A stretch of DNA of 64,000 nucleotides from Macrostomum hystrix (Eukaryota; Animalia; Platyhelminthes). Under the pieces are notes generated by a model. The model made no database searches. It saw nothing but the letters and a program-made list of their open reading frames with translations, and was not told where the DNA came from. Below are positions 45,901 through 48,900 of the stretch, in pieces (position 1 is the first letter of the stretch; each line of letters begins with the position of its first letter). The position numbers and the translations under genes are program-made. The stretch is taken from positions 3,348,001 through 3,412,000 of the forward strand of contig CATNEN010000033.1 in assembly GCA_950097015.1 (NCBI GenBank), given 5' to 3'.

Positions 45901-48900
45901 ATTGAGCCTTAGCTGAAACTCCCAGATCTTCAGATTGAGCCTTAGCTGAAACTCCCAGATCTTCAGATTGAGCCTCAGCTAGCACTCCCAGATCTTCAGG
46001 TTGAGCCTCAGCTGAAACTCCCAGATCTTCAGGTTGAGCCTCAGCTGAAACTCCCAGATCTTCAGGTTGAGCCTCTGAAAGTTGAGCCTGAGGTTGACCT
46101 TCAGCTTCCTCTGTGACCCACCCCTCCCTCCAGCACGTTGTCCAGTGCGTGATCGTGGCCATCAAGAGCATCGGCAACATCATGCTCGTGACATTCCTGC
46201 TTGAGTTCATGTTCGCTGTGATCGGAGTCCAGCTGTTCAAGGGCAAGTTCAGAGCCTGCAACGACGGCTCCAAAGCAACAGAGGACGAGTGCCAGGGCTC
46301 CTACATCTACTATAATAAGAACGACGTCAGGCAGCCTGTGATGAAGCCGCGAGAGTGGCAGAACGAGGAGCTCAACTTCGACAACGTGGCCCACGCCATG
46401 CTGTCCCTGTTTGCTGTCTCCACATTCGAGGGCTGGCCAAAGTGAGAGCCCGGTTCTTGGGATCACAATGTCCAGAAATCCCAACAATAATAAAGTCCGA
46501 GAAACCATGGTCTTATAAAGCCTGGGGGGATCCCACAAATCATAAAGCCGGGGGAAATCCCACAAATCCAAAAGCCGGGGGAAATCCCACAAATCATAAA
46601 GTCGGGGGAAATCCCACAAATCCTAAAGCCGGGGGAAATCCCACAAATCCTAAAGCCGGGGGAAATCCCACAAATCATAAAGTCGGGGGAAATCACACAA
46701 GTCATAAAGTCGGGGGAAATCCCACAAATCTTAAAGTCGTGGAAAATAAATTCCACAAATCAAAAAGTCGGGGGGAAATCCCACAAATCATAAAGTCGGG
46801 GAAAATTCCACAAATTAAAAGTGGGGGGGGGGGAAATCCCACAAATCATAAAGCCTGGGGAAATCCCACAAATCCTAAAGTCGGGGAAAATCCCACAAAT
46901 CCTAAAGTCGGGGGAAATCCCACAAATCCTAAAGTCGGGGAAAATTCCACAAATCAAAAAGTCGGGGGGGAAATCCCACAAATCATAAAGCCGGGGGAAA
47001 TCCCACAAATCATAAAGCCGGGGGAAATCCCACAAATCATAAAGTCGGGGGAAATCCCACAAATCTTAAAGTCGTGGAAAATAAATTCCACAAATCAAAA
47101 AGTCGGGGGGAAATCCCACAAATCATAAAGTCGGGGAAAATTTCTCAAATTAAAAAGTGGGGGGGAAATCCCACAAATCATAAAGCCGAGGGAAATCCCA
47201 CAAATCATAAAGCCTGGGGAAATCCCACAAATCCTAAAGTCGGGGAAAATCCCACAAATCCTAAAGTCGGGGGAAATCCCACAAATCCTAAAGTCGGGGA
47301 AAATTCCACAAATCAAAAAGTCGGGGGGGAAATCCCACAAATCATAAAGCCGGGGGAAATCCCACAAATCCTAAAGTCGAGGAAAATTCCACAAATTAAA
47401 AAGCCGGGGGAAATCCCACAAATCATAAAGCATGGGGGAATACCACAATTCATTAAGTTGGGGAAATCCCGAGAATCTCAACGCTTGTGAAATCCTCAAG
47501 CCACCGAATTCGATCCCTCAGGCTGCTGTACAAATCGATCGACTCCGCGAATGAGGGCCGCGGTGGAGTCTACAACAATCGGCCTCCCATGGCGATCTTC
47601 TACGTTGCGTACATCATCGTGATTGCCTTCTTCATGGTGAACATCTTTGTCGGCTTCGTCATCGTCACGTTTCAGCAGGAGGGCGAGCAGGAGTACAAGA
47701 ACTGCGAGCTGGACAAAAACCAGGTCTGTCTGAGCTCGTGAGGGTGTACTCGGGAGGGTGCCTGGAGTCACTCGGAAGGGTGCCTGGAGTCACTCGGGAG
47801 GGTGTCTGGAGTTACTCGGGAGGGTGTCTGGAGTCACTCGGGAGGTTGTCAGTCGCCACCTATGGTAATCTTGACTGCTGGTAAAACTAAACATGGCATA
47901 ATAAGTTTTTGTGGCTGCAATCACAGCTGAACTCTACGAAAATAAGTGGACAAGCTTCAGGCATTCACGTAGCGAGTGAGAGTGAGGGGGGACAGGATTT
48001 GCATGGCCGCAGGCAGTCGCGCAAAATAAACTGTAGATCAGAGAAAGTGCTAATAGGAAAGGTAGGCGGGGTCTAATTAGCATTTGTACCTGTACTAACT
48101 CATTAGCGTAGCTAACTATCGCGGGCTGCGGGCTTGCTCTTAGTTTAAGCCTGACTCACCGAGTGGCGGCAGTGCTGGCCCCCAGCCCCTGCAGCTGTCT
48201 TTCCGAGCTTTGCGAGATCAGTCTTTCTCGCTGCTGAATGCTCAAATTTCTGGCCGAAACGGCAGCTGTGCTGACTGCGGCGCTGCAGCTGGCTGAGGCC
48301 GGGAAATTCAATTCGACTAGCCGCGACGTCTCGACAGTTGGCCTCGGCCTGGCCATCGGCCTGCCACTAGGCATTGTGGTCATCGTAGGTGCGGCGGCTG
48401 CAGCTGTCGGATTTACGCTTGCCCGACGTCGACGACAAGACACGGGCGTTTATCGGCCCAGCAGTCAGGAGATAGGCGCAGCCGGTCAGAAGCGGACGAC
48501 GTCGGCGGCGGCAGCATCCGTCGGCAATGCAGTGCTCAGGCCTCCTAAAGAGGAGCGACTCATCTGAGAGAGCTGGGGATCGAGACTTCATCTGAGGGAC
48601 TTGAATGAACTGGCGAGGTCTATCAAATGGCTTGCTAATCTATCAAATGGATTGCTAATCTATCAACTGGATTGCTAATCTATCAACTGGATTGCTAATC
48701 TATCAACTGGATTGCTAATCTATCAAATGGATTACTAATCTGTCAAATGGATTGCTAATCTATCAAATGGATTGCTAATCTATCAAATGGATTGCTAATC
48801 TATCAACTGGATTGCTAATCTATCAACTGGATTGCTAATCTATCAAATGGATTGCTAATCTATCAACTGGATTGCTAATCTATCAACTGGATTGCTAATC

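Follow-up and report, generated by a model that had tools for sequence, protein, structure and literature searches.

Can a Crumbs-family polarity protein be encoded by a gene small enough to sit, without introns of its own, inside an intron of a calcium-channel gene? The question is raised by an open reading frame (ORF) of 109 codons in the flatworm Macrostomum hystrix, found in a window of 64,000 nucleotides (nt), the whole stretch of DNA analysed here (contig CATNEN010000033.1, positions 3,348,001 to 3,412,000, assembly GCA_950097015.1); coordinates below are positions in this window unless another contig is named. The ORF lies in sense orientation within an intron of an L-type voltage-gated calcium-channel (Cav) alpha-1 gene, and the explanation that we favour, with considerable confidence, is that it is a stand-alone intron-less gene for a minimal Crumbs of the CRB3 type, expressed as its own short RNA.

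The coding sequence and the segments of its predicted product are the following, where aa stands for amino acids, TM for transmembrane, and X1 and X2 for two of four public runs described below.

48238..48567, plus strand: short Crumbs coding sequence, intron-less and complete, stop included; 109 aa; the contigs of X1 and X2 span all of it with no differences
48238..48300, plus strand: N-terminus, aa 1-21 (MLK...LQLAEA), moderately hydrophobic (Kyte-Doolittle 15-aa means 1.0-1.5)
48310..48318, plus strand: N-S-T sequon, aa 25-27, in a polar ectodomain of ~11 aa, as read from the sequence
48334..48423, plus strand: TM helix, ~aa 33-62 (Kyte-Doolittle 15-aa means 2.0-2.7), aligning with the arthropod Crumbs TM
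48424..48471, plus strand: RRRR stop-transfer (aa 63-66) and juxtamembrane FERM-binding motif, R66-x3-G70-x-Y72-x-P74-S75...E78
48535..48564, plus strand: Pro-rich stretch and class II PDZ-binding ERLI at the C-terminal end, aa 100-109 (PPxEERLI, then the stop)

The reading frame extends from the ATG at 48238 to the TGA at 48565-48567. A second in-frame TGA (48235-48237) abuts the ATG, as a sequence-only reading of the locus had pointed out, and the stop-to-stop segment begins exactly at 48238; there is therefore no N-terminal extension. The window contains 106 ORFs of at least 90 aa, nearly all of them made by minisatellites, and the length of this one is therefore not significant: the case rests on motif content. 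Hydropathy gives a single-pass protein, in which the TM is followed at once by a cytoplasmic tail with a basic start that continues to the stop, and aa 1-21, which end in an A-x-A cleavage context (A-E-A) before G22, are probably a signal peptide.

As published, the Crumbs signature combines RxxxGxYxPS, which lies next to the membrane and binds FERM proteins, with ERLI, a class II PDZ ligand at the C-terminus (PMC5968619); Tyr10 and Glu16 of the tail are essential in flies (PMC4359734). Every residue of that signature is found in the ORF (R66, G70, Y72, P74, S75, E78 and the C-terminal ERLI), with aa 70-78 reading GVYRPSSQE. In the 47-aa tail, counted from R63, Y72 corresponds to Tyr10 and E78 to Glu16. 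The NST sequon, single TM, basic stop-transfer, FERM motif and C-terminal PDZ ligand that the sequence-only reading had listed are all present. The large ectodomain of EGF and Laminin-G (LamG) repeats that marks the canonical long Crumbs proteins (Crb, CRB1/2 type) is absent from the ORF, which instead has the CRB3-type format: 109 aa, within the usual range of ~100-120, and an ectodomain with no recognisable domain.

A Pfam scan found no domain in the ORF, only sub-threshold noise, and Pfam has no model for the Crumbs tail. A hidden Markov model (HMM) was trained on 106 distinct arthropod Crumbs fragments covering TM and tail (P0003-P0122), with the ORF and all flatworm sequences excluded; many carry the source name 'protein crumbs', and the fragments match the Crumbs chain from Drosophila in PDB entries 4WSI and 4YL8. 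When every six-frame stop-to-stop segment of the window was scored with this model (n=1079), the ORF reached 33.7 bits (E 1.5e-9, Z=1079) and the second-best segment 5.6 bits; the maximum among 5000 shuffled versions of the ORF was 10.5 bits.

An exhaustive phmmer search of 1.84 billion representative proteins returned two matches, of which P0001, from Macrostomum lignano (E 1.9e-5), is the sole genuine one; the other, P0002, is a bacterial repeat protein that matches through its DTGMYRPS repeats and was dismissed as chance. A PDB search with the tail had the Drosophila Crumbs tail (4WSI/4YL8) as its sole match, at an E-value (0.41) that is weak, as expected, because the peptide is merely 37 residues. 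In an ESM-Atlas feature search the top clusters were vertebrate 'Protein crumbs 3' (0.95, 185-188 shared features), which is a likeness to CRB3 and not a statement of descent. A profile that combined the ORF with the tails of P0001 and the fly protein gave 225 matches, and the best 120 of the 225 are all arthropod last-exon fragments. A word-indexed homologue search among proteins of 60-190 aa gave no match to the ORF at E<=1, a metagenome scan gave no close relatives, and the exact product of the ORF is not on record in the assembly collection, M. lignano assembly included. Literature searches for Crumbs in Macrostomum or Platyhelminthes gave no relevant paper. Because the HMM score, the phmmer match to P0001, the PDB match and the ESM-Atlas features agree, the predicted protein is, on sequence grounds, a genuine Crumbs-family TM and tail, and the identity first proposed for it is supported.

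P0001 is a protein of 403 aa, with a signal peptide, Laminin-G-like and EGF domains (Pfam), a Thr/Pro stalk, a TM and a Crumbs tail that reads ...RDRRKDTGVYKPSDRELG...LRPPNEERLI; the FERM region of this tail is DTGVYKPSDRE, with DTGVY at aa 362-366. Pairwise BLASTP of TM and tail gives 43% identity to the ORF (E 2e-12). The P0001 gene is one uninterrupted ORF (NIVC01000282.1, 4600-5811) in assembly GCA_002269645.1, which is the Mlig_3_7 assembly of M. lignano (PMC10733133), and it is the sole Crumbs-tail ORF within 5 kb on either side on that contig; CT/GA-rich microsatellite DNA lies ~4 kb downstream of it. P0001 is the closest relative found: the two genes are alike in TM and tail, in DTGVY(R/K)PS..E(I/L)G, in LRPPxEERLI and in lacking introns, whereas the ectodomain of P0001 has ~330 aa (one LamG-like domain, at least one EGF domain and the Thr/Pro stalk) and that of the ORF ~11 mature extracellular residues. 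Since the nearest relative is a flatworm LamG-EGF mini-Crumbs, independent shortening is argued for, and the DTGVY shared by the ORF and P0001 suggests a flatworm paralogue series in which the CRB3-like format arose by loss of the ectodomain. Comparison of these sequences, which for the question of descent offers only ~60 alignable sites, thus places the ORF, most probably, at the far end of a row of Crumbs paralogues shortened in flatworms; strict orthology with vertebrate CRB3 is the less likely reading.

Among known Crumbs proteins the ORF can be set beside three. (i) Vertebrate CRB3 (the ERLI isoform, ~120 aa) is likewise a type I protein of ~110-120 aa with a short, domain-free ectodomain bearing an N-glycosylation sequon, one TM, a FERM-binding motif and an ERLI C-terminus, and CRB3 clusters are the best language-model matches of the ORF. 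The human FERM motif is GTYRPSSEE, compared with GVYRPSSQE in the ORF. On the other hand, the ORF tail is longer (47 aa), with an Ala/Ser/Thr-rich linker and Val in place of the Thr before the Tyr, and the ORF gene is intron-less and nested in a Cav intron. Sequence searches gave no direct link between the ORF and CRB3; the likeness rests on format, motifs and ESM features. The human CRB3 C-terminus is ...LPPEERLI (PMC6237394). (ii) Caenorhabditis elegans CRB-3 (C35B8.4) has 100 aa, ends in EGLI, has no predicted signal peptide (Waaijers et al. 2015, PMC4359734) and was found late owing to its small size (PMC4359734). Compared by published description, it shares with the ORF the status of an invertebrate minimal Crumbs, a short domain-free ectodomain, the TM, and Tyr10 and Glu16; it differs in its EGLI end and lack of a predicted signal peptide, where the ORF has ERLI and a signal-like N-terminus. 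The cleavable signal peptide and N-glycosylated ectodomain of vertebrate CRB3 have no counterpart in CRB-3. (iii) With the Drosophila Crumbs tail (4WSI with PALS1, 4YL8 with Moesin) all FERM- and PDZ-motif residues of the ORF align, at the same distance to the membrane (Tyr10, Glu16). The fly protein differs in its huge ectodomain of EGF and LamG repeats, in a tail of 37 aa, and in the aPKC sites T6 and T9, at which the ORF has Asp and Val.

Is the ORF expressed on its own? Four public runs (X1-X4), from one 2020 study and one organism, each contain 48-65% of the sampled words of 47950-48615, and their contigs were compared with 47745-48618, a range free of conserved Cav exons and of long minisatellites. 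The contigs of all four runs are error-free and colinear through the whole ORF into the first copies of a 20-bp repeat (~48631-48661), and free of joints, insertions, deletions and foreign ends; they start at 48164 (X3), 48165 (X1), 48190 (X2) and 48214 (X4). The ~420 bp of intron upstream (47745-48163) are covered by no contig in the four runs. The contig sets are transcriptome-like in size (~40-48 Mb, longest record 20-23 kb), and the coverage looks like that of RNA, because at a depth of ~6 genomic DNA would be expected to assemble the 300 bp of non-repetitive sequence upstream as well, in one or more of the four samples. Simple intron retention is argued against by the bare remainder of the intron. 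The RNA thus outlined adds two features.

48164..48237, plus strand: 5' leader of 74 nt, without ATG; apparent RNA 5' end 48164/48165
48568..48965, plus strand: presumed start of the 3' untranslated region, running into the 20-bp minisatellite; the contigs stop inside the repeat

As the leader has no ATG, the RNA supported by the contigs has no AUG ahead of that of the ORF. The sequence-only reading had held the ORF to be independent both of the host mRNA and of any long Crumbs gene upstream, and this is supported by the in-frame TGA, by the colinear contigs from 48164 to ~48660, which carry neither joints nor foreign ends, and by the bare intron upstream, given the RNA nature that the coverage suggests.

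The placement on the same strand in a Cav intron also holds. The exon at 42310-42978 has homologues that carry the names L-type alpha-1D or alpha-1C; the best matches of a homologue search with a 222-aa Cav exon are 66-73% identical, with none from Macrostomum, and the exact products of two Cav exons are not on record in the assembly collection. The surroundings of the nested gene on the host strand are as follows.

End at 47723, plus strand: IIIS6 exon, ending ...ELDKNQ, phase 0
47724..49807, plus strand: host intron of 2,084 bp, GT...AG, phase 0, between the IIIS6 exon and the III-IV linker/IVS1 exon
49808-49966, plus strand: III-IV linker/IVS1 exon, ending ...IALAMK, with start junction cag, phase 0

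Upstream of the ORF this intron carries a 22-bp repeat (47748-47850). Downstream, the 20-bp minisatellite TCTATCAAATGGATTGCTAA begins 52 nt past the stop codon (48619-48965, ~17 copies, 93% matches), and the first poly(A)-like hexamer after the ORF is ATTAAA at 49213. Minisatellites of differing sequence fill nearly all of the Cav introns (45569-46080, 46515-47470, 47748-47850 and 49991-50104, with periods of 30, 27, 22 and 21 bp) and create many long spurious ORFs on both strands. A repeat search of the host intron found only minisatellites, with no terminal repeats or target-site duplications around the nested gene, and Rfam over 47400-50000 gave just one sub-threshold miRNA-like match, outside the ORF. 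Elsewhere in the window, an uninterrupted ORF of 916 aa (12333-15083), with three decayed copies of its 5' part upstream (9882-12037), has the look of a mobile element, and no exact match to its product is recorded in the assembly collection.

What else might the ORF be? The idea that GC-rich intronic DNA has by accident produced an ORF resembling a Crumbs tail can be set aside as practically negligible. The window is indeed full of long spurious ORFs, no Pfam family covers this one, the single-sequence PDB match is weak and one of the two phmmer matches was a chance bacterial repeat, yet a score of 33.7 bits, against at most 10.5 for the shuffles and 5.6 for all other window segments, refutes the idea for practical purposes; TM, motif spacing and C-terminal position are all correct, and transcript-like cover coincides with the ORF. 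A very improbable alternative is that a conventional, longer Crumbs gene ends here in its last exon, or that Cav has an alternative terminal exon here, in either case with upstream exons spliced on. Crumbs TM and tail do form a separate last exon in many animals, the database holds hundreds of such fragments of ~74 aa, and AG dinucleotides that could act as acceptors end at 48163, 48194 and 48221. However, none of these three enters the ORF frame: those ending at 48194 and 48221 enter frame +1 and that ending at 48163 frame +2, and in the other frames the readings from all three stop within 24-37 codons. The host exon ends at 47723 in phase 0, and the statement of the sequence-only reading that the first two are out of frame with Cav1 exon 15 also holds. 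The contigs read colinearly across the AGs ending at 48194 and 48221, the starts at 48164/48165 directly follow the one ending at 48163, and no foreign ends occur at any of the three. Outside repeat artefacts the whole window has no EGF-like cysteine pattern, and it has no EGF- or LamG-like exon, which agrees with the earlier statement that upstream exons of this kind are lacking. Together with the TGA directly before the ATG, the colinear coverage and out-of-frame AGs speak against both a hidden Crumbs gene of the long kind and an alternative exon of the channel gene.

Two other alternatives keep the Crumbs identity. Perhaps the ORF is a decaying remnant, the TM and tail end of a duplicated mini-Crumbs that kept an ATG by chance, with low transcription and no function. 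The lack of an orthologue that would show constraint and the loss of the aPKC sites speak for this, but none of the five FERM-motif residues has been lost, and Glu16 and all of PPxEERLI persist, despite just 43% identity to the nearest paralogue found, the ORF begins exactly at an ATG with a signal-like segment and not in mid-domain, no EGF/LamG relic lies upstream of it in any frame, and the RNA boundaries match the ORF; we regard a remnant as improbable. Unlikely too, if less so, is that the same coding gene has no promoter of its own, its RNA being released from the Cav pre-mRNA, in the manner of flatworm operons, when a spliced leader (SL) is joined by trans-splicing to an acceptor within the 5' leader; its expression would then be coupled to that of the host. 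In M. lignano SL trans-splicing is estimated to affect about 30% of genes, with acceptor motif YTNCAG (PMC8629364). The CTGCAG at 48189-48194 fits that motif, the AG at 48162-48163 directly precedes the starts of two contigs that lie one base apart, and a branch-point-like heptamer, TACTAAC, is found at 48093-48099, 65 nt upstream of the contig starts; the three together form a possible trans-splice or outron arrangement ahead of the nested gene. Against this, no contig 5' end carries foreign (SL) letters, which at a depth of ~6 and from contigs only is weak evidence; two contigs pass straight through CTGCAG to 48164/48165; the AG at 48163 does not fit YTNCAG; and the upstream cis donor (47723) would compete. 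Because no contig has SL letters and two read through CTGCAG, we consider a separate transcription start near 48164 more likely than SL processing of Cav pre-mRNA, clearly if not overwhelmingly.

The stand-alone gene thus preferred has several points against it. No orthologue or homeologue of the ORF was recovered that could show purifying selection. The N-terminal hydrophobic stretch is only moderately so and has a Glu inside it, and no purine stands at -3 of the AUG. All four runs belong to a single study and have no library type on record, their contigs are blind to strand and true ends, and the AG that abuts two contig starts could be a splice acceptor, for instance for a spliced leader. 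In the tail, aa 68-72 (48439-48453) read DTGVY, so that both canonical aPKC threonines (TxGTY) are replaced, the fly T6 position by Asp and the T9 position by Val, with a Thr at tail position 7. The linker between the FERM and PDZ motifs is ~10 residues longer than in typical tails of less than 40 aa. The aPKC threonines are absent in C. elegans, sponges and placozoans as well, and are accessory rather than defining (PMC5968619). The linker is Ala/Ser/Thr-rich with several Ser/Thr, and the Asp in the DTGVY of the ORF and P0001 is a possible phosphomimic of the mapped aPKC phospho-threonine. The lost threonines and longer linker may mean altered regulation of the short Crumbs.

If the gene stands alone as we favour, transcription, presumably from its own promoter, would yield a short RNA with its 5' end near 48164 and the ORF AUG first. 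The product would span the membrane once, as a type I protein, with a very short ectodomain that can be glycosylated on the outside and a cytoplasmic tail of 47 residues within. The ERLI of Crumbs binds the PDZ domains of Stardust/PALS1 and Par6, and RxxxGxYxPS..E binds FERM proteins (PMC5968619; PMC4359734). From this known biology of the family we infer that the juxtamembrane motif would recruit FERM proteins of the Moesin, Yurt or EPB41L5 type and that the C-terminal ERLI would dock in the PDZ domains of Stardust/PALS1 and Par6; both contacts would nucleate an apical polarity complex with no extracellular EGF/LamG function. The short Crumbs would then hold the polarity complex at the apical membrane and would play no part outside the cell, either in adhesion or as a ligand; topology and signal-peptide cleavage are, like these partners and the promoter, predictions. 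In flies, Crumbs TM and tail alone rescue most crumbs phenotypes (summarised in PMC4359734).

A broader proposal, which we put forward tentatively and think doubtful as it stands, is that a tail-only, CRB3-like Crumbs arose in Macrostomum-type flatworms separately from those of vertebrates and nematodes, as lineage-specific intron-less Crumbs paralogues grew progressively shorter, and that the copy described here is expressed from within the L-type Cav unit, for example by SL processing of the host pre-mRNA. Were this true, an apical-polarity microprotein would be coupled to the expression of an excitability gene.

Single-exon genes of ~100 codons nested in introns escape gene callers; this one is absent from the large protein collections searched, and was probably missed in that way. 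What is new here is a flatworm member of the minimal-Crumbs type, already known from vertebrate CRB3 and nematode CRB-3; it is of interest to polarity and flatworm researchers and is not a new kind of system. Macrostomum is a tractable flatworm genus, with RNA interference, transgenesis and regeneration available, and the ectodomain-truncation series within it is usable to probe the role of the Crumbs ectodomain. After vertebrates and nematodes, this would be the third animal lineage with a minimal Crumbs, little beyond a TM and a tail of 40-odd residues, and a flatworm minimal Crumbs supports the view of the tail as the functional core of Crumbs.

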